DNA of 64,000 nt from Penicillus capitatus (taxonomy: Eukaryota > Plantae > Chlorophyta), in the NCBI GenBank assembly GCA_965649825.1, contig OZ287699.1, positions 1,208,477 to 1,272,476 of the forward strand, written 5' to 3'. Below the pieces are notes generated by a model, which had not been told where the DNA came from, made no database searches, and saw only the letters and a list, made by a program, of their open reading frames with translations. A program made the position numbers and the translations under genes. The stretch's first letter is position 1, and each line of letters opens with the position of its first letter. Below, piece by piece: positions 1-58,154 of the stretch.

Positions 1-87
1 AAAAACACGGATCGGTATCTCTCCCGTCTGACCGATTTCGCAATACCCAAGTGCGTATCTCTCCGACCCTCGTTCACAAGATGATGT

Positions 88-3000
88 ATGCCTTCAGTGT
101 TGAGCACGGGAATAGAGCAAGGCAAAGACAATGGCGCCTCCGTCGGTTTCAAATCGATTGGCGAGTCGGAGGACGATGGCGACGAATGTCCCGTGAAAGG
201 AATGACACAAGACCCTCTCTTCGGCCCAATAACCTCTAAGAAAACTAAAAAGCGTTCGGAGTCGACGACGAGTCGCAATCGGAACCATGCGACGCTTCCC
301 GAATTGGACTTGACGGAGAGTCAGACCCTGCGAGTAAAATACAGGATGCAGAATGGCATGACCAGTGTCGGAACGTTTGCGGCGACGTTTGCGCCTCTAA
401 CTGTTCCTGTCTCAGGAAACACCCCGCCGTTTCAGATTGTCCTGCACCCTATAGACCCGAACCTGCCGACAGTGATACCACAACCGGCGTTGATGGGCCC
501 ATCCATAATGTCCCACGTTCGCCCCCTGATGCCGTCAAGAGAGATGCCTATTTGTGTATCGTTGCCTGCTGCGGTGGTCCATCCACCTGTCGTGCATCAT
601 CCCACGCCGTCGCCTCTCATCACAGGGCCTGCTCCAAATCCGACCGTCTCTGCTGTACCTGCCAGAACGGCAGTGATGCAGGGAGCATCTCAGAAACCGG
701 ACTCCAATAATAAGGTATGGACGGGTATGTGTCTGAAGTGACAGGGTGGAAGCTGGATGGTATCTAGGAGTCCGAGATGCAGCAAGTGAAGGATTTGGTT
801 GATGAGAAGGGATGGCGTGTGACGATTCGTCAGTACCAGTTGGATCTCTACCGAGCCGCCTGCCGCAGGAATGTCATTGCATACTTAGATACAGGATCTG
901 GCAAGACTTTCATTTCTGTTTTACTGATCCGGGAAGTGGCGGCGAAGATGGCCTATAAGGCTTCGACCGAAGGGACACCCCGGAAAAGCATTTTCTTTTT
1001 GGTCCCCAAAAAAGTGCTGGTCCACCAGCAGGCGGGTGTTCTGAAGCAGTTTACGGATCTCCGTGTCTCTGAACACTCGGGGGATCGATTCAATGAGGAC
1101 GTCTGGGATACCTCCACCTGGAGGTGCTACATTTTACGAGCAGATGTCTTGGTCATGACGCCACAGATTCTGCTCAATCTCCTTCGGAGACAGTAAGCGA
1201 TTTCTTCATCACCTTGATGTGACATCTGAACGTGGTTAGAGTGATGGGTATTTCCGAGATTGCGCTCATCGTCTTCGATGAATGCCATCATGCACGAAAA
1301 AACAGTCCATACAACTGTATCATGCAGGTATGTACCGAACAGCATTACTGGTGTTTGGTGTGAGCCGTCTGATCTAGGAATACTATCACAGAGCCAAAGA
1401 TGCGCAGCGGCCTGTACCTAAGATCTTTGGCATGACAGCATCTCTCGTCACGAAGAAACGCAATTCTGACGAGGTCTACAACAGCTTTCTGGAGCTGGAG
1501 AGCAATCTTGACAGTTTGATCATGACAACGAGTCGCGAAGACGTTCAGAAGCATGCGACCTCTGCCATCGAGCGCGATGTGCCGTACAGCATGAACACCA
1601 CGCAAGAGCAGCTTCCTCAGACGTTTCATCTATTGGAGAAGGCAGTGGTGCGGCTGACCATTGCGAATCGACTGAGTATACAACATCATCGAGGACGTGC
1701 TGGTGGATCCTCCTCATGGCAACTCGATTCCAAGAAAGTCAAGGGCCCATTGGAGCAGCTTATTCGACAGATAGGCAATGTCCATCATGTCATCACCGTT
1801 ATGGGTCCATTACCTGGCATCTACGCCTTGTCTGAAGTTGCGGACACCTGGCGCGAGAAAGAGAACAAGAAACTGACCACGTGGAATTTTCCATCGGACA
1901 AGAAAGTGACCGATTTCAGTCTCCATGATGATCGTTTCGAGAAACATCGCGATCTCATCGACGAGAGCTTTGGGAATATGTCAGAGATGCTCTATCATTC
2001 TATGCTGGACATGGGAGTGGCTGTATTGATTGGACTGTTCCAGATTCGAGAGGAAGAGGCACGGATGGAATTGCAGAACGAAATGCAGAGTGCCACAACA
2101 AGTGATCGACCAAAGTCTGTACGTTCCGTTCAGTTAGCTTTGCGTCGTTTGCGAAGCAAACTGGATCTCCAGCCTCTCGAGAAGCTCATTCAGGATCCAT
2201 CTCCATCAGAGGAATGCTTGAACAGCCCTGCAGATTCTGCCAGCTCTGTTTTTCTCTCTCATCGAATGCAGCAGTTATTGAAGGTTTTGATGGTGGAGAA
2301 GTCGCGAATTCCTCCGGAAGAACGCTCAAAGTGGCGTGGAATGATCTTTGTACAACAGACACTGATGGCCATCATTCTGGAACATGTTCTCAGCATCAAC
2401 CCTCAGCTCTCATTCTTCAAATGCCAGAGCTTGACAGGACACAACGGTGCCATTCTGGCGGCGTCTATGGAAGACCATCATCAGCGCAAGATTGTCGAAA
2501 TGTTCCGCACGGGTCGGGTGAATCTCTTGATCTGTACCAGTGTGGCTGAAGAAGGACTAGACATCACACACTGTTCTATGGTCATTCGTTTCGATCTTCC
2601 CGTCACCGAGGCGTCCTACATCCAGAGCAGAGGACGTGCCAGAAAACCGGGTTCATCTTATGTCATGTTCATCAATGCCGATGATACGACCGAGAAGACG
2701 ATGATTGTCAATCTCCGTTTCGCAGAGCAGTGCATGAAGCAGTTTGCTATGTATCGACAGAATCGTGATGACATGGATGATGATGAAGACGTTCTTGGGG
2801 GAACCTATGAGGCCTACTTGGAAATCGCCGAAGCTGAAACGCAAGCGATCTTGCCAAAGGTTGACGAATCGAATGAGGTTGCCCAGAGAACAGCTCCTGA
2901 GATGATTGCTAAGTATGTGCAGCAGCTGCCACAGGACGAGTACTGTCAACTGCAACCGCATCTCATTTTCCGCTCGCGTGACCAGCAGGGACGGACAGAG

Positions 3001-6000
3001 TTTCAGTATCAGCTCACGCTTCCCGTCAACGCAGCTGTCAACAAAGCTATTCTGGGAGAATGGTGCGGCTCGAAACAGAAGGCCAAACAGAGCGCATGCT
3101 ACGCCGCCTGTTGTGAACTGAGAAAGCTGGGAGAGCTCAACACTTCCTTCTTCCCGATTTCTCACAGAGAACGTGCCGAGCCCAGGAGAAGAACCTTCAA
3201 ATCCTTTGGTTCCCAACTCAAAGTCGAGACAGCGATCAATCCAGATAACCTTTCAGTGCAACATGCTGAGTGGAAAAGTGTGGCTGAACGATCAGCGGAG
3301 GCGCCGCCTACGAACGGTCTCGTCCTGCATCTCCAAGTCGTCCGATCGACGCCTGAAATGGAAACACCTTCATCGTCATCTCATCCAGGTTTTGCTTCTC
3401 TTGATTTCTCGCCCCCTCCCTGCATGATCTGTTCTGTTCCAGAATCGCTGCTCTTTGGAATTCTCTCTCTGAAGAAACTGGACAACCTTATGCGTTTTCC
3501 TCTCTACCCTGAAACGGGCAACATTATGGTGGATTTTTTGGATGCTGGATCGAAAGTTGTGTCCAAAAAACAGTTGCAGACGCTCAAGCACTATCACTTT
3601 GCTGTCGAGGAGTCTCTCTATTTCAAAGCTAAACTCTTTACAGCCGTCTGTCGTCAGAAGAGTGACATTATCGAAGCTCTCGTCGATGAAGATGTCGATC
3701 TTCTTCCAGAATACCTGAAGTCAAGTCAAGAGGATCAGCCAGTCCTGAACAAAAGCTGGTATCTGGTCTGTCCTGTCAAACTTTCGACAGGCGACACTTC
3801 CAATGAAGAACCGGATCCGCTGTACCAAAATTCGTCGATGGACAACGATGTCGATGAGGTAATGGACACCACCGAAAGTGAAGAATGCTCAGACTACAGG
3901 ATCGATTGGGAAATGGTGGAGCAAGTCAGCCAACGCATCAAGCATCTCGACAAACCTGGACTGACGAAGTAGGATCAATCTGTGGCTCTCGTGGATGGCT
4001 GAGGGGCATCGTGGATGCGATGATGTGACAGGGTACATCCAGATTTGGCATCACTGAAGAAAGGAGAGATCTTGCTGTCGCCGTATAACAGCAATGCGTA
4101 CAAACTCATGGGCATACGAGATGATCTGAACCTCGAATCGAAGTTTCCGTCGCGGCCCAAGGCCGAGTTCTATGATCCGAGTGTGACCAAAGTACACATC
4201 TGCTGTCACATCAGAGAAATGTGTGAGAATGGTGGGCTTGTAGGAATACAAAGGAAGTTTTGTGCCCAACCGGTCCAATCGACAGTTCTCTACCTTCCTG
4301 GAGTACTACACAGAGCATTGGAAATTCAGTGACCTCGATCTCGAGCAACCTCTCTTGGAATGTGTGACCTTCAAACAGATTCCTGTGGTGAAGAGAGCGA
4401 AGAACCTGTTGAATCCATTGTGGAAACAGGCAAGAGATATGGACGTCTCAGAGGAGCACTTGGATGACTGGAACATTGCCATTCACATGTTACCCCAACT
4501 CGTTGTCATCTATCCCCTGAGCTATACCTTCTGGCAATCCTTGAGCTACATCGTGGCCGTCTGCTGGAAACTCGAATCGATGCTGAAGGTGGGGGAGCTT
4601 CAAGAGAACCTCTTTCCTCCGACGGAGCCTATCCATCCATCCATTGGCTCACCTGATGTGGCACTCATCTACGAGAGCGTCAGCAGTAAGAGCTGTCATG
4701 AACACTGTACCTATGAGAGGCTGGAATTCCTGGGCGATGCGGCACTGAAGTACATCTCATCGTTGTACTGCTATTTCAAGTTTCCGTTGGGACATGAAGG
4801 TATCTTGACCACACAACGCAGTTCCATCATCTCCAATTACCAGTTGGCCAATGTCGCGGTGACGATGGGACTGCAGAAGTATGTACGGAGCATCCAGATT
4901 GGGGAACATCCATGGAAGCCGGCAGGATGCGAGTTTCTGGACGCATGCTGGGCACAGCTTGGCAAATCTGGCATCGGGCATTCGTGGTTTGGCGGCCGGA
5001 CACAGAAGGCCAGCAACGAAAACGCAGCACATCAATGCGAAACGTGTGTCCTGCCGGTCAAACAGGTGGCTGACATCGTGGAAGCACTCCTCGGTGCATG
5101 CTTTGTACACAGTGGCATTCCCTGTGTCTGCGCTATCATGCGTCGAATGGGCCTTCTGGATCCATCAGCAGACTTCATGCTGACCATCCAGACCAACCAG
5201 GATGCCTGGCTCAGAGATGTGGGAGATGCTATGTCTCCTGGACTGGATGGCCTGTCCGACTTCGAAGAGACAAGAAAGCGGCGTTTTGAACATGGGCGCG
5301 AGATCATTGGACTTGAAGATGTGATTGGCCACGACTTCGAAGCGCCGTCCTTTGCCCTTGAGGCTTTGACACACTGTTCATGGCCACACCAGGATCCTCC
5401 ATGCTATCAAAGACTTGAGTACCTAGGCGATGCTGTGCTCGATTTCATGATCGCTGTGCACTACTTCAATACGTATCGGGACATCGATCCTGGACAACTC
5501 ACATCTCTGCGCTCTGCCTCAGTGAACAACGATCGGTTGGCATGCACAGCTGTCAAGACAGATCTGTTCACACACCTGCTGCATTTCTCATCCTATCTCC
5601 AATCGCACATTACCGACTACGTGATGAACTATGCAGAGGGAGAGAGATCCGGCGCGCCAAAGGTTCTTGGAGACATCGTCGAATCGATGATCGGTAGGAT
5701 CCAACTTTCCGCTGTTCTGCTGACACAACAGATCATGATGCAGGTGCCGTCTATCTGGATCTGTATGGTGATTTTTGGGCCACGTGGAAAGTGTGGGATC
5801 CCCTTCTGCAACCGCATTACACACCGGAAACTGTTCCGATACATCCGGTCGTGGAATTGACGAACCGTTGTCATGCCAAAGGACTCGAACTGAAGTTTGC
5901 ATCGATCAAGGACGTTGCCTCGTCCTCGCAGGGACCTGAGAATGGTGAAGCAAACGAAATGGACATTTCGAACTCAGACGATTCGGATGGAGACGAAGAT

Positions 6001-9472: not shown

Positions 9473-12337
9473 TCAGTCCATCGTCAGATCAAGCAATGTA
9501 CAGACATGTTGTAAGACGGCCTGCACAGTGGATCTGTCGCTGACGAGGTGACTCTGTGTAATACCCAGCGCGAAATCCTCCTCAGGGATGGCAAGACCAA
9601 AGGACCCACCCAATCCTGGATGACCCAGTCCATAGACCAATTCTCCATTGCCTTTTCTTTTGAAGACGAAAACGCGGAATCCCAGACTGTAGGCACGTTC
9701 GGCAAAGGTGGCATAGCCTTTGTACGCGTCTTCGTGTTTTGAGGATTGTTCGTGCAGTTCTCCGTAAAGGGGCTGGACATCCATCAACGGAGAAGGTGCT
9801 CTTGGAGACAAGGCACTGTAGAATCGTGCCAATGCCCTTGCAGACATGTGCCCATTGGCACTCGGAATACATGCCTCCCGCACTTGACGCATGTTGAAAG
9901 TGGTGGGATTGAAGAGATATTCAGATCCCTTAAATTTCTCCCATCTTGGCCCACTGGACGTCGGTGGTGCGTTCTGTGCGCCAAAAGCAGTGAGAACGCC
10001 GTCAGGTGAGGACGCCAGAGACTCCATGTGCAAAACGGCCAATCGATCGTCAGATATGTTGGATGGCAGACCGATGTGCAGTTCATCTCCCAGATCCAAT
10101 GGCTCAATGATCCACTCCGTCAGCAATGTGTCGATGCTCTTGCCTGTCATGCCTTGGAGGATTCCTCCGACGAGGTATCCAAAAGTGAGGTAGTGGTATT
10201 CTTCTTTTTCTCCGGGAGCATGTGCCGGTGGAGATTTTTGGAGAAAGGAGAGCATCTGTGTCCAGTCCAGAATCTCATCGAGGGTGGCAATGTCTGGCAA
10301 TGCCCCTGCTAACCCAGCTCGATGATTCAGCACATGACGCAACGTGCATTGTTCCTTGCCATTCTGCTCGAATCCGGGCCAGTATTTGGACACAGGGTCG
10401 TCATAACTGGCACCCGTTCTTTGAATCGCCATGTGCAAAAGGGCTGCCGCGATGCCTTTGGTGACAGAGAAGACATTGAACAGCGTATCTGGTTTGACAG
10501 GACGGGGATCTGCGGTGCCCAGTGTCCCAGCTGTCACATCAGCAAGAAAGGCTCCCTTATGTATGACAGCCACCTGCATGCCCAGAAGCTTCTCTCTTTC
10601 CTTCACTTCCTGCACCACTTTGCAGATGTGCTGCTGAAAAGACGCATTCCGTGCCAACGTATCAGGGTAGATCAATCCCGAAGCATGGTGCCTCTGATCG
10701 ATCGCCTGTTTCAGCGTATCCAGTGCCACAGTCGCCGTGGTTTTGAGATAGGGATAACGCACTTCCATGGTCGAACAGAGTCCTTTCAGCAATCCAATGA
10801 CTCGCGTGAAGAAGACCAGTTCTCCAGGCCAGGCATCTACGGGGCGTTTGGGTCTTGGACGACTTTGCTGTTTGGCTCTGTACTCTTTCAAGCGCCTTTC
10901 CTTCTCGGCCTTGGCTTCTGAAGCAGGGACTGTTTCGAATGCACGGCGGAGATTGACGATGTCCTGAAATGGATCCTGCTCTCGTACCTTCAGCCCCATC
11001 TCTTCAAAGGAACGCAGCAGTCCGTCCATATCCATCGTGTAACAGGAATGCACTAAACGTGCGAAGGCCAGTTTGATCTTCTCATCAAATCTGCGTGCGA
11101 GGCCAAAATCCAAGAGAACTGGAACAGACGTGTCGCCGCCATTCTGAGCGACATTCGTCGAGATCAAGATATTCCCTAAAGGCATGGCGATGGATCGACA
11201 AGCAGATCTCTCAGGAAGAGCGTGATGCATTTTCTGACCTGGGTGTGGATCGGCATTGAAATGTCCATCGATGTGCATCTGAACGGCCCATGCAGCGCAG
11301 ATTCGATCGAGGAGGGCCAATCGATCGACTCTGTGCTTCTCATAGGACTCCACTTCCCGAACACTGAATCCTTGACAATACTCCATCACCAAAACGTCTG
11401 GCTTGACAAGTTCATCGTTCGGAATCTTAGGCACGATGACTTTGATCCCAGCTCGTTCCATGTTGGCACGAATCTCTTTCAAATTTCGCGCCTCGTTTCT
11501 CAGATCTAGCTCTTCCTACAGTTCCAGAACATAAACATCCCCTTCTGGCAGGTTGTACCATACCTTGACGGCTGGAATCCATTCCTGCACGATTTTGCGG
11601 AAGTCATAATCTTCGTTGATCCTGAAGAGAGTCCATCGGTCAAGAAAAGTGTGTTTTCGCGAGTTCTTACCATGCTATCCAGTTGCACAGCGTTTCGAGA
11701 TTGGAGAGATCGTTCTGCATGAGCTTCTCCACGTTCTTATGCCGTGCCTTGATGACCACTTCCTCTCCGCTCTTCAATCTTGCTCGATGCACTTGAGCGA
11801 CGGAGGCGCTGCTTATTGGCACTTCGTCGATGTCTGAAAAGAAAACGGAACGAAAGGCACTGCCTAGAGACTGCTTGAGCATCTCGTCCACTTCATTCCA
11901 CGAACGAGACGGTAATGCATCCTATTAGCAGTCTCACTCTTCCAAGACATATTTCTCACTCTTTTTTCGACTTGGAGTTTTCGAAAGTGTTGGATGTAAG
12001 GGAGAGGCATGATGTCTGGCCGTGAGCTGAGGAATTGTCCCACTTTGATCCAGAGTCCCTTCAAATCGACAATCGACTTCGAAATCGCCTGCCATAACAG
12101 ACCTATATCTTCTCACTCTTTTCGCATTCCACTGATAAGTACCTCGGCGTTGTGTTCATGCGCTTGCTCCCAAAGTACGTCGAGTTCTGGATGAGAAACG
12201 TCTTCATCTTCAAGGGAGAGACCTAAACGCTTCTTTAGCCCACGCTCCTTCCATTGCGTTCGCTTGATCCGCCAGAAAACGCCGAGAGCAGTAGAGTAGA
12301 CGCTGCAGGTGCGCACGGAACTCGAAACGGCGTCCAT
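9473..12337 (-). CDS. ABC1/ADCK atypical kinase fused to a serine beta-lactamase-like domain; spliced (start may be 12430)
   Basis: GLWIKVGQFLSSRPD, GHFNADPHPG, LLDFG, then FSVTK (SxxK), YHYLTFG and GHPGLGG. Confidence 0.88.
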
Positions 12338-32600: not shown

Positions 32601-34289
32601 TTACAGGATTCGGCAAAGTGCGGCTTCTGGTTACGGGGCATCTCTTCATTCCTGACGATGGATGGTTTAGGGAATTGTTGGTGTCGCAGCTAAGCCGATG
32701 AGTGGTGTTCTCGAAGCTGCCTCACAGGTCACCCAAGGCATCGATGTCTTCAAGGACAACATCACCTCCAAAATCACGCGTAGGCTCAGCGCTTTACTGT
32801 CTTCTCTGAGAAAGCGCGTTCAGGGCGGTCTGAGATTCCGAGTGTGAGACGGAGACTTCCGCTCTGCATTAAAGGCGATCGATTGGTCCGACCGTATGTA
32901 GCGGTGACAAATCTTGTCCGTCGTTACCGATGTCGATATCCTGGTTTGTGTAGCACGCCTCTCTGGGACAGTGGCTGATGTTTGAAGCCAGTATGACGGA
33001 TAAACGCCATCGCAAGGCTCCTGAATCTGTTACTGAATACTATGAAGGCCATGCCGTTCTGTCAGCATCCGCCGCCATTCTCTGGACAAGCGAAAAGATC
33101 TGCATCCTCCACGGCGGTGCCCTCCACTGACCTGTAACGAAGAATACAGGATCGATTGTTGTGTTTAGAAATCGAGCCCTGGCATGGACGCGCCTTGCTG
33201 AATACTCCAGATTCACGGCTACAGTGTCCGCATGTCTCCATTCACTGGATGTGTCCGTGGAAGGACCTTCTCTCTGTGAATGTCTCTGTGTCATCCGAAA
33301 GCGAAGTCTCGACAAAACCAGAGCGTCTAGAAATCCATCCGAAGACGATCGCCTCGTACAAGACTGGATACTTTATCATCCAAGACATCAGACTTGGAAA
33401 CGTAAGATAGAAAAGGCCAGTTCATTAGGATACGGTTCGGTGACCTTAGGCCAGAAAAATTCAAGCTTCCGTCTGGAAGGCTGCTCAGAGTTATGGAGTG
33501 CTCTCAACGACGATTCCTGAAATCCCAGTTCGTCAGATGAGTGGAATGGACCTTAAGACACCCACTCTCGCGCCGACAATGACATGTCCAGGCTTCAATC
33601 ATATCTGGCAAACATTTGACAATGCTATGGGCGTCTCCATTTGGAGACCTGTTCTCCTGAGAGGTACGGTCTTGGATGTACACCAAAGATGATGCAAGAG
33701 GTATCTCTGGATGCAGGATACGTTCGATTGGGCGATGTCGTTGTCGAGGGCGAAGTGCACGTGCCAGAACGCGTGGCGATTTTCTTAGATGACGGACCCG
33801 TTACGAAAGAGGACAGTCAAGCGAGAGTGATGCCACCCGTCGCTTTCAATCTTGTCTTCAGAGATAGGCGTGAAAATTCAGACCCTGTCTCCATATGGCA
33901 ACCGATACCGCCTGTACCGCCTGACACGGAATGACTCCAAATCGTCACGCACTGTCTGTTCTAGACTGGCTACGTTGCCGTGGGATGCATTGTCCATGCT
34001 GATTTGGAAATGCCTGCTTTGACATCCATGCACTGTCTGAGGGAAGATCTAACCGTTCCTGACAAACTGTGCCCACTCCATATCTGGCAGAAGGCCAGCA
34101 CCACAGTAAGGACCCCCTCTGTGCTGACACATGATCAAGATGCGGGTGCAATGACAGGTGGCAGATTTATCGTGTGTCCTGTGGAAAACAAGAAACAACA
34201 CCGTGGGATCATTCATTGCCATGCCAACCAGTCAAAGTCCAACACCACGACACACCAGAATACCTGATCTGCAGAAACTTGAAAGATAA
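17645..34289 (+). CDS. VPS13: VPS13 bridge-like lipid transfer protein (chorein-N, PH, Vps62-like repeats, Dysferlin/Pex-like, VAB/SHR-BD, ATG2_C-like); many introns
   Basis: MFEAQALYYLKKYLGRYV..SVWQGNVVL chorein start; FWRPQPPPGYAIMGD and IWRPIAPPGYRPLGD repeats; LPRGWEWEGPW..RQRRWIRRR; GVTGVMSQPLEGAKRDGMKGLVTGFGK. 3' end approximate. Confidence 0.92.
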
Positions 34290-34517
34290 CAGCATCGCTC
34301 GTCCTTGTCCAATCGAATCGTGCTGTTCATATTATGACTGCACAGTACCATAGCAATAGGAGGAATCAACCGAACAGTGGGCGTTTATCATTGTGCGAAC
34401 GTGGGTGGACATGTGTGAAATGACTTTAAAGTGCATACCATGGTACTGAAGGGTGGGATGAGGTATTGGCTACTTGGAATGCCGACGGAAGAGTTGGCGT
34501 GGTTCCCCTGTTCCTTT

Positions 34518-34637
34518 GAGCTTCCATCATTCAACCGTGAATGCACCCGATCCCTTCAGAACTCGGAAGTTAAGCGCGGTTTGGGGTCAGTAGTACTGCC
34601 ATGAGTGATCTGGCGGGAAATCGACCTGTGGAAGCTT
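34518..34637 (+). rRNA. 5S rRNA: 5S rRNA gene, single copy in window
   Basis: About 120 nt; terminal stem GAGCTTCCA/TGGAAGCTT; conserved GATCCC.TCAGAACTC, box A AGTTAAGC, box C region AGTAGTACT..ATG.GTGA; helices kept by compensatory changes; followed by a T run. Confidence 0.93.
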
Positions 34638-34692
34638 TTGCTGTCTACTCATATAGCATCGTCGTCACTACCTTCGTAGCAGACGTTTTTTT
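34636..34692 (+). terminator. Pol III terminators: T4 at 34636-34639 and backup T7 at 34686-34692
   Basis: Oligo-T runs directly after the 5S gene. Confidence 0.65.
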
Positions 34693-34770
34693 CGCAGAGT
34701 GGACACGTCAAATCACCGCCCACTTCCATCCCAATAACCGTCCCTTTGAAAGACGGTGCCCCAAAGGAAG

Positions 34771-35329
34771 ATGCAGATGTAATTCGTCTCAATCGTCACT
34801 CAAACGACAGTTCATTGTCACACAGTTTAGATCACTGCTGCCGCCTTCTAACAAACGCAGAGGTCCGAAAGGTGAACCTGCTGTCGTCGACCACGTGTTA
34901 GTCGAGACGACTAGAGTTCACTTTGGCAGATCTTGTTGGAAAGGAATGCAGATTGTAGGGAATCGAGAACAGCAGTTCCCTCAGAAAAGAAGGCATTCAT
35001 TCCTCTGCCTTCGCTTCCTGTCGATCGAGGACCACTGGTGTAGGTGTACGAGTATCTGACATTGCAGGAGAGGGACTCCGTGAGGGATACAGCTTTGCTG
35101 TCTTTCAGAGAGAAGGCCATTGCCGTAGCGAATTCTTATTTACCGATCGTGGTAATGAGATGGACCGTTTCAGGATTTTGGCCTGCTCGAGGCAGAAGTG
35201 CTGCAGTTGATGAACCTGAGGCCAGATTCAGAACTCGAGCTGCCTCTCATCATCGAGCAATGCGAAGATCGACTCACAGAGGAACAAATCGAACATCTGA
35301 TGGCACTGCTCCGACAGACCTTCACTTAA
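34771..35329 (+). CDS. RPC9: RNA polymerase III subunit RPC9/C17 (CRCP, Rpb4 family); 5 exons, 117 aa; missed by the ORF track
   Basis: Exons 34771-34778, 34826-34871, 34930-34992, 35044-35124, 35174-35329 give MQILDHCCRLLTNAEV..SEKKVYEYL..EAEVLQLMNLRPDSELELPLIIEQCEDRLTEEQIEHLM, the RPC9 rather than RPB4 pattern. Confidence 0.85.
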
Positions 35330-38909: not shown

Positions 38910-40415
38910 TCAGGAACCTTTAGAGAACTTCTTCAACGTCTTCTTAATCCAGCGACTTGACTGTCTAACGTCGGAATACAATCCAGGGAAGTCCGACGTC
39001 CCACAGACATCTGACGGGTCTCTCAAATGTGCAATGGCCAGCAGTTTGTCCTTTTCCGATGTCGTATCAATCATCGGTCCTCCATCGTCTCCGACGCAGA
39101 ACTCTGAATCACTACGATCTGTGCAGAGAAGATTTCCTTGGAAAGTTGTATTGTACGCTATGTCACACTCCTTCTTATCGATAACAGACACATAGGCCAC
39201 TTGGAGGTTGGTTGCATAACCGCTAAGGGCACTTTGCCTTCCTAGTCCAACGATCTGCAAGGAACTCCCAGTTTTCGCCTTCTTCTTCTGAAGCTTGACC
39301 GGCTTCTTGCTGGATGTTTCATTCAACTTGATCAGGGCCAAATCATATGCATTGCCCAAGGCTTGGGGGTTTTCTCCAGTGTACCAATCTGGGTGAATCT
39401 TGAAATCTGCTACGCTTCGCTTCTGCAGGACAGGTGATGGATTCACTTTCATAATGGCAAGAAATGGAGGCGCACTTCAGTTTTTTCGAGACAGTCATTC
39501 AAGTCATCGGTGCTGCGTGCATTCACCGCAAGAAGCTGAACGGTTAGGCTTCCACTTCCATCCATACAATGCGCAGCAGTCAATACCGCGTTCTTTGAAA
39601 CAAGTGCGCCGCCGCAGACGTGTTGATACCCGGCCTCCATTGATGTGCGCAATGAAACAAAATAGTGATATTGATCGCAGGGGGCATCCACGCCGGGCGT
39701 TACTTTTGTTTTTAGAAGATTCCTGTTTTGTCCTGATTTCTCAATAATCTGAACAACAGCCCACAACATTGCAATCGATTTTGATCATTTTTTGCAAACT
39801 GCTCACCCCATCACAAGTTCTTTCGGCAAACAAATTGATGAAACCCTGCATGGCTTCTCTTCTTTCATCGTTTTCATGACAGCGTTTCTCATTCGACAGA
39901 CGACAAAGCCTGTTGCGAAGAGAAATGTGGTCGTCGCAGTTATAGTCATCATTGGCAATCATGTTTTCGATAACATCGAAGCTGCCCCAGGCGACGGCAT
40001 ACTCGATAACCGAGAGGACTTCATAGCCAAAATCGCCGTAAGAAACGTTTCGCTTGATATCAAGTGAAGCTCCGAGCTCTCGAAATCGGACAATCGAATC
40101 GACATCGTTCAGTTCAGCCGCCGTGAACAACGCTTCCGCGGCGGAACATGGAATGAGAACGGCATCAGGATATTCAATAGATTCCATCGGTTCTTTGCAG
40201 TTTGTTGAGTCCTGAGCATAGCATGTTGGCGCCGTTGCAGAGTCGGACCGCAACATGCATCTCGGCTTTTCGACTTCGACACCGTTGCTCAAACCAGTCG
40301 TTGAGCAGAAGCATCCATTCTGACAGACGACAGGGCGGACCTGGAACACAACCGATACTATCAAAATTCGCAGCACCACATCAGCGCTTCCGAAAGGCAA
40401 CTTCGTTTTGTTCAT
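38910..40415 (-). CDS. Secreted Cys-rich/ankyrin-like/trypsin-fold protein, predicted catalytically inactive; spliced
   Basis: Hydrophobic leader; GCFCSTTG..C..C..C..C domain; ankyrin-like ALFTAAELND and VIEYAVAWGSFDV; a 58-nt intron joins to CGGALVSKNAVLTAAHC, YDLALIKL and CVGDDGGP. Confidence 0.8.
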
Positions 40416-50448: not shown

Positions 50449-53400
50449 TTATTCTTTGATAATGATGTTCTTCAGCAGTCGTGGAAATTCGTGTTCAAAC
50501 TCTTCTCTTAGGTATCCGACAAACACACTGATTGCTGCCTTATCCCATTTTCCAATCTCGCGTGAAGAAGTTGTGTGCGACACCAAGGAGACTTTTTCAG
50601 ATTCTGTAGGGGGATCTAGTGTGAATGAGTTCCACACGAAAAAAATTGAAAACCCGCCCTTATTAGAAGGTGGAAATGATATTGCCGTAGAAATGACTTC
50701 TTCGAGTTTTACGCATTCCAATGCCTTTCTCGCAGAATCGCACACTTCCGAATCTTCGTCGATGCACCTCCTAGCCAGCGTCGGCAGAAGCTCGCCGGCG
50801 CGGTGCGGAGCCGCCATGATGACGCGACCGACGGCCTTTATCGCCGCCCGACGCACAAAATCATTTTTGTCGCCGCATCCCCGTACCAGCGTCGGCAGAT
50901 ACTCGCCGGCGTACTGCGGAGCCGCTACGACGATGTGGCCTATGGCCTCCACCGCAGTCTGACGCACACGCCAGTCTCCGTCGTTGCCTTTCCTAGTAAG
51001 TGCCGACAGTAACTTGCCGGCGTGTTGTGGAACCTCTTCGACTACGCGACCGATGGAGCCTATCGCCGCCTGACGCACACGATAATCATTGTCGCCGCAC
51101 CCCCTGGCCAGCGTCGCCAGATGCTCGGCGGCGTGTTGCGGAGCCGCCACAACGACGCGACCGATGGAGCCTATCGCCGCGTGACGCACAGAATAATCTT
51201 TGTCGCCGCACCCCCTGGCCAGCGTCCACAGATGCTCGGCGGCGTGTTGCGGAGCCGCAACAACAACGCGACCGATCGAGTTCATCGCCGCCTGACGCAC
51301 GCTAGAGTATTCGTCGCCGCATCCCCATACCAGCGTCGGCAGATACTCGGCGGCGTGTCGCGGTGAAGCCGCAACGACGCGGCCGATAGCTTCCATCGCC
51401 GGCGCACGCACAACAGAATTACTGTCGCTGCAATTATTCGCCAACCTCGGCAGAAACTCTCCGGCATGCTGAGGCATTGACGCCGCGACGACCCGGTCGA
51501 AGGCTTCCATCGCCACCTGACGCACATGCCAGTCGATGTCGTCGCACCCCCTTGCCAGCGTCAGCAGATGCTCGCCGGCGTGCTGCGGTGCCGCCACGAT
51601 GACGCGGGCGATGGCCTTTATCGCCGCCTGACGCACATGAGGGTGTTTGTCACGGTATCCCATCGCAAGCGTGGGCAGATGCTCGCCAGCATTCTGCGGC
51701 GTCGCCGCCGCAACGACGCCTTCGATGGCCTTTATCTTTGCCTCGCCTATGTTTTCGTCTTCATCGGCGCGCCCTCTGGCAAGTATCGGTGGACGCTCGC
51801 CGCCGTACTGTGGCACCGCGGCGATGACGCGGTTGATGGCTTCTATCGCCGCCTCACGGACGTTGCAGTCTTCGTCGTCGCGCCCCCTCGCCAGCGTCGG
51901 GAGATAGTCGCCGGCGTGCTGCGGAGCCGCCACGACGACGCGGCCGATGGCCTTTATCGCCGCCTGACGCACATAATGGTTTTCGTCGTAGCATCCTATC
52001 GCCAGCCTCAGCAGATAGTGGCCGGCGTGTTGTGGAGCCTCTTTGACGACGCGGCCGATGGCCTCCATCGCAGCCTTACGGACGAGGAAGATTTTGTCGC
52101 CGCATCCTGTCGCCAGCGTCAGCAGATAGTCGTCGGCAATCTGCGGCAACGCCGCGACAACGCGGCCGATGGCCTTCACCGCAACCGCACGGACGTCCAG
52201 ATCTTCGTCGCCGCACCTCTTCGCCAGCGTCGGCAGAAGGTTGCCAAAATTCTTCGTCGCAGCGTCGATGATGTCTTCAATGGCCTCCAACGCAGCGTCA
52301 CGTACGTCGTAATTGTAGTCGGCGCTCCCTCTCGCCAGCGTCGAGAAATAGTCGTCGGCGTATTGCGGAGCCTCCCTGACGACTCGGCCGATGGCCTTCA
52401 ATGCCTTCATGCGTACGTCGTCGTTATTGTCGCCGCATCCTTTCTCCAGTGTCGGCAGATACTTGCCGGCAAGCTGCGGCACCGCCGCGAGGACGCGGCC
52501 TATGGCCTCTACCGCAGCCATACGCACGTCCCAGTCTGTGTCGCCGTACCCCTTCACCAGTATCGCCAGCTGCTTATTGGCTTCCTGTGGCACCGCCGCG
52601 ACAACGCAGCAGATGGCCTCCATGGCTGCCATACGCACACATCCAATTTGGTCATCGCACACCCTTGTTAGCGTCGTCAGAAGTTCGACGGCGTCGTCCT
52701 GTGGCACCGCCTCGACGACGCGGTCGATTGCTTCTATCGCCGCTCGACGCACACTGGAGTATTCGTCGCGGCATCCTAACGCCAGCTTTGGCAAATGCTT
52801 GCCTGCGTGCTGCGGCGTTGTTACGGCGAGCCGGCCAATGCTTTCTACCGCTGCAAGACGCACATGCCATTCTTTGTCGATGTACCCCATGGCCAATGTC
52901 TGTAAAAGCTCGCCACCGTGCCGTTGTGCTGCATCGAATACGAGATTGATAGCTTCCGTCGCCACTTGACGCACGCAGTCGTCGAATTTGTCGTAGTCGT
53001 CGTCGTCGTCGTCGCTTTCTCTCGCCAGTGTCGGCAGATGCCTGTCGGCGTTCCGTGGCGCCTCCCCGACGACACTGTCGAAGACTTCCATTGCTGCCCG
53101 ACACACGCCAAAGTCTTCGTCGCCACATCCTTTCGCCAGCGTCGGCAGATAGTCGCTGGCGTGCTGCGGCGCCGCCCCGACGACGCGATAGATGGCTCTT
53201 GTCGCCGTCCAACGGACGTTTTCGTCTTCGTCACCGCACATTCTTACCAGTGTCGGCAAAAGCTTGGTGGCAAACTGTGGCGCTTGTGTTACGATAGACT
53301 CGAACATGTCAATGCATTCGTCTCTACTGGATGCTTCATGAACGTCATTTGCTATTTGTAAGATAAGCTGCGGCAATGCATCACTGTGCTCTGGAGAGTG

Positions 53401-56400
53401 GGCTGTGAGTTTCAAGACGTCATGAATTTTGACCATTTCTTCCGAATATAAATATCCCGAGCATGCGATCGTGTTCTTCAGTCTATCAACGGTGCCAGCA
53501 AGAAGTCGAGGGAATTGTTCTAGAACGCGAGACAATTGTTTGATCTCTTCGAACACGATTTCACGAATCGTATCATGGTCGATTGTGCTCTCAAGTAGTT
53601 GACGGGCGCTATCGACGAGCGCAATTGCTTGTTTGTCTTCCGTTAAAACATCCAACTCATCGTTATCTGCCTCTTCTAACGTCGCCTCGAGAACTCGCAT
53701 TCTCAAAAAAAGGTGACGCACTCCGAGAACTTCGACGGGTTGTGTGTCAACGATTGAAAGCAGCTCTTTCAACGCTTGTTTGTTTCGACTCTCCGCAAAT
53801 GCGTGCATGGCGAAGGTTAGCATGAGGTCATGCTTCTTATCATACTTCCCCTTGTGGATGAAATCGAGCACTCTTGTCTCCTCATCCGATCCTTTTTGCT
53901 TCAACATTCTCGCTATGTATCTTCCGGCAAAATACTCTTGAAAGGTCAGGTGAGGGAATTGATACTGCTTGCCCTCCAACACGAGCAAAAGGAGTCCGCT
54001 CTCTTTGAAAGTTTGAGCCGCATTCTTCGATGTTGCGTGTAGCATAACAAATCTCTCGTCCATGTAAATGTCTCCATTCCGAAGCGATTTGAAGGCTATC
54101 TTTTCCAGATCTCTAAAGAGTTCCACTTTCTTTATGTTTTTTCCCGCTGGCTTTTCTTCGAACCTTTTCCAGACGTAATTCGCCATTTCGTTGTATATTT
54201 GAAACGTGGTCGTTCCCTTTCCTCCTTTTTCAAAACTATCACCGTGTTCCTTCGACAAAGAACAAAGAATGTGTGCCGTCACCGGAATGTGCGCCATCTC
54301 CCACATGGCGGTATTTTTATAAAGAGATCGGATGAACTTCGGTGCCTCTTTCTCGGACAGTTCGCTTTTTACATAGTCTCGCAGTTGCTCATCGTTGAAT
54401 CCGAGGCACTCTACTTGGATGTCGACACGTGTTTCTAAGTCTCTCATGTTGTAAGGTCGAGACAGCAATAGAACTTTGCACGAACGCTTCCATACGGTGG
54501 ACACCAGTTCTCTCGTGTGGTCATTTGCTTCGTCCAGTCCGTCAAGCACGAGCAGAGTTGAAGGATCGTTGAGGTCATCCTCCACTTGTAAGAGGAGATC
54601 TTCGTATTTGAAGGTATTCGGGCTTCCGCAGAAGCATATTTTCGATATCGCTCCTTCGAGCCTTGACAATTTCTGCTCCGCGGGCTCGGTAGTGTTGAGA
54701 ACTCTCACCGGCACCACGTAAACGGCTTTGAACTCTTGTGCCATTTCCCCCAACGCCCATTTGTGTGCGATAACTTTTGTGATGCACGTCTTACCGGCGC
54801 CGGGGTTTCCGTAGAGAAGAACACGTCGAACTTCTATTTCCGGATCTCCGGGCTTGAGAGATCTTCGCTTGAACAGATCGTCCAGAGCAATGGGTTTCGT
54901 GACCCTCATCTTCTTCTCGTAGTATTCTTTTGCTTGGTCCACTCTATGGTCTGAGGACTTTCCTTCCATTGCTTCCCCTCCCCGATTGCCTTTTATATTC
55001 CCTTCCTTTGATTTATTCGTTTGCTCTTGGATAATCTCCTCGGAAATGACGATATGATGCTCCATGTCCTTGACATGCTTGGGTAATCCGTCTCCGAACA
55101 AAGACGTCACCTACAAGTCAAGGCACTTTATCGACGTGGATGTGCTTTCCGTGCCAGTACCGTCGCGAAATGGTTTCGCAAGTATCTGTTCCTCAGCTCT
55201 TCTCTTTTCGAATCCACGATGGCAAGAGGAATGTACCCCGCGTCTCTGCCGGTCTTGATGCACAAATCCTTACGTTTTTCGGTAGTGCTTTGCAGGCTCC
55301 GTTCTCTAAGCCTGTCTTCTATGCTGTTCCCTCCCAGCCACTCTGCTAATGCTTCTTCGCTAGAACCCTTGCAAGACTGGTGTAGGACGAGCAAGGCGTT
55401 CTTGGTGTCTTCGTCTTCGTTGCATTGGCCAATTCTGTGGATCTCAGATAAAACATCTAACAGTGCGATCAAGATATCACTATCGTCAGTCCATCCTTCG
55501 TTTACAGTCTGCTGCGTTGCCAGATTGACCAGCTTCTTTGTGGCATCGTCTCGGACGTTTTCCGACAGACCTTCAAGTGCGAGTGTGCCCAACTCGCAAA
55601 CGATGCCATATCTCAACGCTTTCAACTCTTCTTCATTACTCATATTTCTTTGGCGCTCCATTGCAGCACTGTAGACGCTTTCAAAAAGCTCAAGGTTCGC
55701 TTCGTCCTTTGCCGCCTTTTGTCTTGCTATTATCAGATTCTTAAATGTGTCAAACCACGGTTTTTTAGACACTCCCATATTGGCAACGGCGGCTCGAGCT
55801 TTTGCGTATGCATCCTGAAGATCCTCGGGATCGACGTCACCTCTTGCCAGATTTCTGACACAGTGAAGAACATACAGGAATACGCACAATCCACAGCCGA
55901 TATGTTGCATTGCAGATTCAAGATGCGAAGAAGCATCTTCTGTTCTGAAGCGTTCCACTGCTTGTCGAAGAGTCTTGAAATGGAAGCGCACCGGGTAGTG
56001 CTCGCATGAGAGCTCCATTGCTCTTTCTTTCTCCGCAACGGCACGACGGAGTTCATGCTTCTCTTCTTTGCAGACGCCAGTCTGACTGGTTTCTGAAAGC
56101 AGCAAAAAAGTCTGACGTAGAGCGAGAAATGTCACTTCATATTTTGCAAAGTTCTCTTTTGTAAGCCTCGGTTCCGCAGAAAGGCTGCCTAAAAGCTTTC
56201 TGGCTATCACGACGAGCTCTGCAACACCCCCGTATGAGGAAGGATCAGCCAGGTTAAGTGCTCCGTAGAGGGCAGTTGCGTAGTTCGGTCGCCGGAAGTT
56301 TTCTTGACAAATACAGGAATAGAGGGCTTGTATTAAGTCGCTCAGAATGTTCTTGTCATGTGTAAAGCGGGGTATGATGTTGGCCAATTCTGCATACTCA

Positions 56401-56819
56401 AGGACACCCTTTGGCTTGATATATTCATCTTTTTGTTCGCCATATTTGTTTAACCAACCGAGGAGGACAGCGAGTTCGTCCTTATCCGTCGTCTTGTTGT
56501 AAGCCTCAACCAGCGACATGGTGCTATCGATTCTGTATTTCTCTGAGACAGCGCGCAGGAGTTTAGGGTTATGACGTTCTTCAATGACTAAGTCTACGCT
56601 ACTGGGTTGCCCACCAACTGTCGATGCAACCGTCGTCTTGTTGCAAGCCTCAACAAGCGACGTGGTGCTCTCAATTTCGTTTTTCTCTGAGACAGCGCAT
56701 TGGAGTTCGGGGTCGGGGCGTTCTGCAATGGTCATGTCTTCGTTACTGACTTGACCGCCAACTGTCGATGCGGAAAGCCCTTCACCACTGGGTCCTTCGT
56801 CGGGAGCTCGAGCTTGCAT
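50449..56819 (-). CDS. NLR-like STAND NTPase: helical N-terminus, NACHT, 23 HEAT repeats; about 2,100 aa; 2 exons
   Basis: Intron 55111-55160 (GTACTG..TTGTAG, 50 nt) fuses the 589-aa and 1553-aa ORFs in frame (HFAT|VTSLFGDG). Walker A GNPGAGKT, Walker B LLVLDGLDE, FPHLTFQEYFAG. Confidence 0.9.
50712..53280 (-). repeat. Coding tandem array of 23 HEAT-like repeats, 37 aa / 111 nt unit
   Basis: Consensus PQHAGxxLPTLARGCGDxxxxVRxAAxxAIGRVVxAA; the 111-nt period is visible in the DNA. Confidence 0.93.
56487..56771 (-). repeat. 144-nt (48-aa) tandem duplication at the NLR-like N-terminus
   Basis: ASTVGG..AVSEK..SLVEAxNKTT occurs twice; CCAACTGTCGATGC at 56614 and 56758. Confidence 0.85.
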
Positions 56820-58154
56820 GTTCGTTTGTAATCTGCACAACAAAACGTCTTCGCTTGTAAGCTCGAGGGAATGGCAAAACTGCTTGCCGCCACACAAAGT
56901 TCTCGGAAAAGTTCACAGTGGAGAAAATGATTCGGACGTTCTGGTTGGCGTAAAATGCAATTGACGGCGAATGATGTGACATGCCGTGTCTGAAAAAGAC
57001 TCTATATTCCTAGGTGCAGTCTTCTGACCGACAATAGAATTTTCTACCGCATCACCTGAAAGGCGTCATCGGAAACTGATTGTATCAATTCCATTAACAT
57101 GCGGTGGTCTCCTTATTGATGAGCAAGAAGCTACCTAGCCCAACATAAGTGCTGTTTTAGATGTGCGACCCCTTGATGGCCGCGAGCATGGATGAACTCA
57201 CTTCGCAACTGGACGCCTTCACACCGACAAGATGGCTCTCAATTCCGAGTCCTCCGAACGCACCCTTCATACCCCGACATCGAACGGGTGAGATCTTCAG
57301 CGCGTCTTGTGTGAGCGGGAGGTGGGGTAGGATGGAATCAAGAACATGTCCATCAAAGAGAAAGGCAACTCGCAACCTTTTGCCTAGAAGTCCATGCATT
57401 AGTTTCGGAATAGTTAATTCGGGAAACGATTCGAAGAATGCAGAACACATATCACGAGCGATCTTGGAAAACAGGCTTGATCGCTCGGATGCGACACTTC
57501 CTCCTTCTCTTTACTTACGAACGACTGAGATTATACACCGTCAAGCAGTAGTGGGTTTCTAGAACCAATCTGCAACATACTTAGCAGTGCGAGTACGATG
57601 CATGCGCAGTGAAGCAAATACTGAGGATTCTACTCGTACTAACCGATTGACATCTTGCAGAATACGGAAGAGATCACTGCCGTTTGTGATCTGCTAGCAA
57701 AACGATATGGGCTTCCCGGCAAAACATGGACAGTGGCGCTTCTTTAAGAAAAGACCTTCGCAAGACGAGATGTGTTCTTAGTCACATCTGGATTGCATCA
57801 TCGCACGAGTCACTTTGACACGGACTATGGCTAAAGAAGGTGATCTACTTATACTTACTTTACTGCAAGCTCTCGATTGACACTCTAAGCGGCGAGTGTG
57901 AGAATGCCTCCGACTGGATGAAATGGCTTTATATTTGCACGTTTCGAGAAACGGGTCCGTCAGTCAACTGTTCCCAAGCAAGCATCTCATCTGCGCGAAG
58001 CGCAGGTAGAGGGAGCCTAATGGGATCTACAACTTTACAGCAGTTAAGGATCACACATACGATCTCTTGTTCGAATTTCGCAGTTTCATTGAGGCTAAAG
58101 GAAACAGACAACAAACAGAAGTGTCATCAAATGCAGAAACAGTCTTCCTCGTTT

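Follow-up and report, generated by a model that had tools for sequence, protein, structure and literature searches.

In the window, by which we mean the whole 64-kb stretch of DNA that was analysed, a complete and solitary 5S rRNA gene was found on the same strand as the gene for the Pol III subunit RPC9, with 133 nt separating the last base of the 5S gene from the RPC9 start codon. The explanation that we consider probable is that an active solitary 5S gene is packed between two Pol II genes of the same direction, and that its adjacency to RPC9 was inherited and is in itself an accident. The locus consists of a 5S gene of the dispersed type and an RPC9 orthologue, both of which belong to known classes, and the host is a core chlorophyte with a compact genome, from which the window is part of a 1.58-Mb contig in an ENA metagenome assembly. 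As judged from the sequences that were compared, the 5S-RPC9 pairing is at least as old as the split from a sister species, and no sign was found that it has been selected as a regulatory link. The features of the locus are the following.

33980-34267, + strand: last coding exon of a VPS13/Vps62-like gene (weak Vps62 Pfam match, E 0.038)
34405-34424, + strand: invariant 20-nt block GTGGACATGTGTGAAATGAC, between the upstream stop codon and the 5S gene
34519-34637, + strand: 5S rRNA gene, complete and solitary (RF00001)
34636-34639, + strand: T4 run at the 3′ end of the 5S gene, likely Pol III terminator (read from the sequence)
34686-34692, + strand: T7 run, 49 nt past the 5S gene (read from the sequence)
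34706-34715, + strand: conserved block CGTCAAATCA in the 5S-to-ATG spacer, 56-65 nt before the RPC9 ATG
34771-34778, + strand: RPC9 exon 1, coding part of 8 nt (ATGCAGAT), with the ATG at 34771
34779-34825, + strand: RPC9 intron 1, 47 nt, 89% identical to the sister species
34826-34871, + strand: RPC9 exon 2, encoding LDHCCRLLTNAEVRK, with 93.5% identity to the sister species
34930-34974, + strand: RPC9 exon 3, whose GTTCCC donor is the least certain boundary of the model
35044-35124, + strand: RPC9 exon 4 (placed by the gene model and the sister comparison)
35174-35329, + strand: RPC9 exon 5, encoding the HRDC-like C-terminal domain, with the TAA stop codon at 35327-35329 (placed by homologues)

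The first-pass annotation had named the downstream gene RPC9, put it on the strand of the 5S gene and counted 133 nt between the two. All of this was correct, with the ATG at 34771, and the stop codon falls where the interval that it had marked comes to an end. The T4 run that it had read as a weak terminator of the 5S gene and the T7 run behind it are both present as well. Since there are only 133 nt between the end of the 5S gene and the ATG, its geometric inference of an RPC9 promoter that necessarily abuts or overlaps the 5S transcription unit also stands.

The identity of the 5S gene was established with the covariance model RF00001 (cmscan), which matched positions 34519-34637 of the + strand over its full length (model positions 1-120 of 120) with 93.3 bits, where the gathering score is 38, and an E-value of 6.9e-19. 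The minimum-free-energy fold of the gene (-41.9 kcal/mol) has the canonical three-arm shape with a closing helix I, and only two non-standard pairs occur in the cmscan structure line. The claim of a single, non-arrayed 5S gene was likewise borne out by this full match and by the lack of any other copy in ~82 kb. Specifically, no second 5S gene or 5S fragment was detected in the 64-kb window, even at E<=1, and no extra copy was present in a further ~18 kb of the same contig, 9.9 kb to the left of the window and 7.9 kb to its right, which amounts to one copy in the ~82 kb of window and flanks. A tandem 5S array, or a 5S gene linked to rDNA, was rejected because no further 5S, 18S or 28S sequence was found in the 64 kb and the 18 kb of flank. 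In the sister species, 42 kb of sequence likewise contained one 5S gene without any other rRNA. No tRNA genes were found in the 64-kb window, and the 5S gene is the only recognisable Pol III gene locally, with neither a tRNA nor any other Rfam family in the 64 kb, its flanks or the sister region. An exact 25-mer of the 5S gene had no match in the JGI metagenome contigs or in IMG/VR, and a literature search on the organisation of green-algal 5S genes returned nothing usable.

The sequences on either side of the 5S gene are unique, with no repeat copies in the ~250 kb that were compared. A direct repeat, GTTCCTTTGA (34510-34519) and GTCCCTTTGA (34740-34749), brackets the 5S gene together with 100 nt of trailer and resembles a target-site duplication. 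Its two halves agree at 9 of 10 positions, which repeats that arise by chance in this region also reach, and the match is no better in the sister species. An origin from a mobile element, be it a Cassandra-type TRIM, a 5S-derived SINE or a retro-copy, was rejected in view of the unique flanks, the missing poly(A) tail and the chance-level repeat.

The upstream neighbour of the 5S gene is the VPS13/Vps62-like gene, the TGA stop codon of which (34265-34267) lies 251 nt before the 5S gene. Its assignment draws on VPS13_N and Vps62 matches to the orthologous ORFs of the sister species, where the last exon is 88% identical and the stop codon is conserved. The gap between this gene and RPC9 measures 503 nt, of which the 5S gene fills 119 nt. 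On the other side of RPC9 follows a WD40 gene that is convergent with it. The possibility that this neighbour encodes a TFIIIC subunit, and hence belongs to a cluster of Pol III genes, was rejected because it matched generic WD40 structures only. A query of concatenated flanking ORFs for orthologous loci returned nothing but generic WD40 matches.

Within positions 34401-34800, the only runs of at least four T residues are the T4 run at the end of the 5S gene and the T7 run behind it. The T4 run and the three bases that follow it (GCT) are kept in the sister species. The T7 run could be a second terminator, in the window species only: it is not conserved, as the sister species reads TCTATTTCGG at this place and has a T4 run of its own 28 nt past its 5S gene. 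The one well-conserved block of the 5S-to-ATG spacer is CGTCAAATCA, which is invariant between the window and both contigs of the sister species and may represent an element of the RPC9 promoter or start site. As a recurrent motif it is not enriched, with 9 matches in the window at <=1 mismatch where 7.4 were expected. On the other side of the 5S gene, GTGGACATGTGTGAAATGAC does not differ between the window and the two sister contigs, in a spacer that is 74% identical overall; it may serve the upstream gene as a 3′-end signal or the 5S gene as an upstream element. A conserved TATA-like element upstream of the 5S gene was not found in the comparison of the window with the sister species.

For RPC9, examination of three reading frames led to a model of five exons, separated by introns of 47-69 nt, with a product of 111 aa. 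The splice junctions are supported by homologues that read straight through between exons 3 and 4 and between exons 4 and 5. With a slash for the junction, the former reads SRTA/VYEYL in our model and is paralleled by ASEKTVYEYL in a green-algal homologue, while the latter reads EKAIA/DFGL and corresponds to an uninterrupted ETAIREFGL. The start codon at 34771 is supported in turn by the spliced N-terminus, MQILDHCCRLLTNAEV, which aligns with residues 9-30 of S. pombe Rpc9 (KVLEARDAYLTNAEV), a run that we take to come directly after the start Met in the yeast protein. Furthermore, the sister species retains both this start codon and the GTAATTCG donor (ATGAAGAT followed by GTAATT), and the same pattern is seen in a relative with 69% identity.

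The encoded protein matched the Pfam family RNA_pol_Rpb4 (PF03874) with 43.9 bits, where the cut-off is 25.6, over profile positions 2-115 of 116. Four solved structures were matched at E<=1e-3, all of them RPC9/Rpc17 (human at 6.5e-8, S. pombe and S. cerevisiae). No Rpb4 chain appeared among the structure matches at E<=1, the other hits being two NADH dehydrogenase chains at E ~0.5. By its sequence, the product of 34771-35329 thus resembles RPC9 more closely than Rpb4, the paralogue in Pol II. Exon 5 alone, which aligns with residues 43-118 of human RPC9, had 160 homologues at E<=1e-3 among 1.84 billion representatives, green-algal proteins included, and the homologue from Ostreobium quekettii carries the UniRef name 'DNA-directed RNA polymerase III subunit RPC9'. 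The spliced model, when compared with an index of 5.8 billion proteins, had no match; the RPC9 of this alga is on record only as a 39-aa fragment, because the contigs carry prokaryote-style ORF calls. The locus provides a gene model for RPC9 that is well supported and has tiny introns, from a chlorophyte lineage that has been poorly sampled and where the gene had escaped ORF-style annotation.

The DNA of the sister species is 85.2% identical to the window and collinear with it, and none of the 29 called ORFs is identical between the two species. Its RPC9 C-terminal ORF, which is 92% identical, is present on two contigs that are 99% identical to each other, each of them with an orthologous 5S gene (93.3 bits). 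Since the sister species has the adjacency on two independent contigs, the pairing is not a quirk of assembly. The contigs, ctg303748 and ctg303767 (ENA ERZ26696514), are 824 kb and 960 kb long, both at ~188x coverage, and probably represent either the two haplotypes of a diploid alga or two strains.

Identity to the sister species varies strongly along the locus. From 88% in the last exon of the upstream gene it changes to 74% in the spacer between stop codon and 5S gene, to 100% in the 5S gene and to 57.6%, the lowest of the locus, in the 5S-to-ATG spacer, followed by 88-94% in the RPC9 exons, 89% in intron 1 and 63-80% in introns 2-4. Intron 1 of RPC9 is accordingly as conserved as the exons, in contrast to introns 2-4, and a regulatory or splicing element may lie in it, beside the 8-nt first coding segment. 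The 5S genes of the two species agree in 119 of 119 positions, between flanks that are 58-74% identical. Because no change in 119 nt would be met with p ~3e-16 even at a background identity of 74%, the comparison indicates that the 5S gene is a constrained, working gene rather than a decaying orphon. In principle, gene conversion from arrays could produce the same picture. Despite the 42% divergence of the spacer, the distance from the 5S gene to the ATG is nearly the same in both species (132 nt in the sister species and 133 nt in the window).

Beyond the sister species, no 5S gene was found near RPC9 in any of 13 other organisms, for each of which between 450 nt and 10 kb of upstream sequence was at hand. 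These comprised, after near-duplicates had been collapsed, nine distinct organisms from JGI metagenomes, a relative with 60% identity, Ostreobium quekettii, Haematococcus lacustris and a streptophyte contig. A pattern scan of the JGI metagenomes yielded 15 further RPC9 loci, most of them with 450 nt to 6 kb of upstream sequence; there was no Rfam match at any of them, and none had the neighbouring genes of the window. The 60% relative (JGI Ga0247387_10142923) lay outside this single-pattern scan, as its motif begins with I and not with L, and was recovered via its RPC9 homologue. The ~800 nt upstream of its RPC9 contained no 5S gene by blastn, nhmmer or cmscan at E<=1. On the same sequence (1-5530), ORFs for an ABC1 kinase follow less than 2 kb after RPC9, whereas in the window the ABC1 genes are 20 kb away, beyond the VPS13-like gene; the gene order around RPC9 has therefore been rearranged in this lineage. 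For Ostreobium quekettii (Ulvophyceae) and Haematococcus lacustris, annotated genomes were used, and in neither was there a 5S gene within 10 kb on either side of RPC9; nor was one seen near RPC9 on the streptophyte contig. The 69% relative (identity of the last exon), which has the same gene structure, is not among the 13, as its 1457-nt contig starts 60 nt before the ATG.

These comparisons are best accommodated by the following sequence of events. Pol III would transcribe the 5S gene from its internal control region, with TFIIIA bringing in TFIIIC and this in turn TFIIIB, and would stop at the conserved T4 run. Pol II would transcribe RPC9 from a small promoter within the 133-nt spacer, perhaps with the help of CGTCAAATCA. 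The pairing of a Pol III template with the gene for a Pol III subunit would have originated once, in the recent common ancestor with the sister species, and would have been inherited since. Indeed, a shared arrangement is to be expected by descent, because the whole region is collinear with the sister species at 85% identity. At such a distance some local cross-talk between the two transcription units is physically plausible, either through a shared nucleosome-free region or through a Pol III complex that blocks read-through from upstream, but its effects would be generic and not specific to RPC9. That a Pol III unit has stayed within ~130 nt of a Pol II promoter across a speciation makes the locus a convenient test bed for polymerase cross-talk.

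How surprising an accidental pairing would be can be approximated. Genes for the Pol III machinery number ~25-30 among ~10,000 genes, which by our own estimate gives a chance of ~0.3% per 5S locus. If the genome had few 5S loci, the coincidence would be uncomfortable; if it had a few dozen dispersed loci, it would be unremarkable, notably when many windows are scanned. The quantity that decides between chance and a link is therefore the genome-wide number of 5S loci. Solitary or dispersed 5S genes, in tens to about a hundred copies, are found in S. pombe and in filamentous fungi. The gene described here resembles them in being a single 5S gene with unique flanks, set among protein-coding genes, with an internal promoter and a short T run. 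It differs in that tens to about a hundred copies are documented in these fungi, while here there is one in the ~82 kb that were sampled. What speaks against an accident is that the two genes share a strand and leave hardly any room for an independent promoter, as would be expected of a coupling device.

An explanation that overlaps with the favoured one is that the 5S gene serves as a generic insulator or roadblock. TFIIIB is known for such roadblock activity in yeast. A Pol III complex bound to the 5S gene would halt read-through from the VPS13-like gene and keep the next promoter open, so that any downstream gene would benefit and the identity of RPC9 would be incidental. The position of the 5S gene, behind the 3′ end of a tandem gene with its stop codon 251 nt before and ahead of the start of the next gene, is consistent with this idea, as is the finding (PMC4228148) that yeast Pol III complexes and TFIIIC sites alter nearby Pol II transcription and the choice of start sites. 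Other tandem gene pairs in the 64 kb, however, have neither a tRNA gene nor a 5S gene between them, so the genome does not follow such a design in general. We regard a role as insulator as rather unlikely.

The first-pass annotation had proposed a feedback loop between the 5S gene and RPC9. According to such an autoregulatory coupling, occupancy of the 5S gene by TFIIIA, TFIIIC, TFIIIB and Pol III, or read-through past the weak T4 run, would set the level of RPC9 mRNA, and the capacity of Pol III would thereby feed back on the synthesis of its own subunit. The shared strand and the 133 nt from the 5S end to the ATG fit this proposal, and so do the preservation of the arrangement and of the spacer length (132 nt) in the sister species and the one conserved 10-nt block of the spacer. 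Yet the conservation in the sister species is expected from collinearity alone, and conservation beyond collinear descent was not observed, the arrangement being seen only in this 85%-identical sister. Of the sequence that might link the two genes, spacer and terminator, just the 10-nt block and the spacer length have been kept. The search for the linkage in relatives thus had a mixed outcome: the sister species has it, with 132 nt on two contigs, and 13 other organisms do not, the green algae Ostreobium and Haematococcus included. The loop found no support in these sequence tests. A purpose-built coupling is the less likely explanation in that the spacer evolves faster than the rest of the locus, the sister species lacks the T7 run and the pairing does not recur in other algae; neither was there any sign that RPC9 is a limiting subunit. 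Altogether, we hold autoregulatory coupling to be unlikely.

Precedents for a coupling of this kind come from several systems. In plants, alternative splicing of the TFIIIA pre-mRNA is controlled by a structured exon that mimics 5S rRNA and binds L5. A 5S-related sequence is there tied to the expression of a 5S/Pol III factor, as it would be at the RPC9 locus, but the plant exon is an RNA-level device inside the gene, whereas here a separate and genuine 5S gene lies outside the modelled RPC9 transcript. In mammals, an antisense MIR element in intron 1 of Polr3e interferes with Pol II (Yeganeh et al. 2017, PMC5358760). The likeness consists in a Pol III-transcribed unit that is entangled with the gene for a Pol III subunit and conserved across a clade. 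The MIR element, however, is located inside the gene, in antisense orientation, where it acts as a roadblock to elongating Pol II, and it is conserved across mammals (PMC5358760), whereas the 5S gene is upstream of RPC9, in sense orientation and outside the coding region, and the arrangement is common to only the two sister species among those sampled. In S. cerevisiae, the TFIIIC site ETC6 is reported to autoregulate the TFC6 promoter (Kleinschmidt et al. 2011, PMC3100981; cited in PMC4228148). This case is alike in that a site for the Pol III machinery sits at the Pol II promoter of a gene for the same machinery. ETC6, however, reportedly binds TFIIIC only and is untranscribed, where the RPC9 locus has a complete and conserved 5S gene; the target is a TFIIIC subunit and not a polymerase subunit; and the autoregulation of TFC6 was shown by experiment, while the 5S-RPC9 pair is known from sequence.

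In a related version of the coupling, a working 5S gene would have been co-opted in this lineage as an upstream control element of the RPC9 promoter, such that loading of Pol III and TFIIIC, which in turn depends on the supply of Pol III, gates RPC9. This strikes us as quite unlikely. If it were true, the 5S-RPC9 pair would be a sense, promoter-proximal counterpart of the ETC6-TFC6 and MIR-Polr3e circuits, and the first to be derived from a 5S gene. A regulatory link would also make this the third independently evolved case in which the Pol III machinery senses its own template load via a neighbouring Pol II promoter, and such circuits would then seem to arise readily in compact genomes. Finally, that the 5S gene is a dead orphon, a stray and non-expressed pseudogene or retro-copy with the working genes in arrays elsewhere, is highly improbable: its solitary state, the lack of a conserved TATA-like element upstream and the weak 9/10 direct repeat, readable as a target-site duplication, could be taken in this sense, but the gene has not changed in 119 nt between species, against 26-42% change in its flanks, it is of full length with canonical structure and a conserved T4 run, it lacks a poly(A) tail, and the repeat on either side is at chance level and no better in the sister species.

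Several other genes of the window merit description. At 38910-39769 (- strand), a trypsin-family protease is divided between two ORFs, which match Pfam Trypsin with 71.6 and 39.8 bits. In place of the usual GDSGGP it has GDDGGP, so that the catalytic serine has apparently been replaced by aspartate, with the LTAAHC histidine motif intact. An uninterrupted ORF of 1553 aa at 50449-55110 (- strand) encodes a NACHT NTPase domain and a very long array of HEAT repeats; its lack of interruption is unusual, as the other genes of this genome are cut by many tiny introns. It is accompanied, at 55128-56897 (- strand), by an ORF of 589 aa that had no Pfam match. The interval 1432-5860 (+ strand) holds a Dicer-like gene with a Helicase_C domain, a Dicer dimerisation domain and two RNase III domains; both the gene and its synteny are conserved in the sister species. 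A single ORF at 9473-11482 (- strand) combines an ABC1 atypical kinase with a beta-lactamase-family domain and is kept in the sister species and in a relative with 81% identity. Among named sequences, the chloroplast-type ABC1 kinase of this alga comes closest to those of Caulerpa lentillifera (84%, over half of the length) and Enallax costatus (72%).
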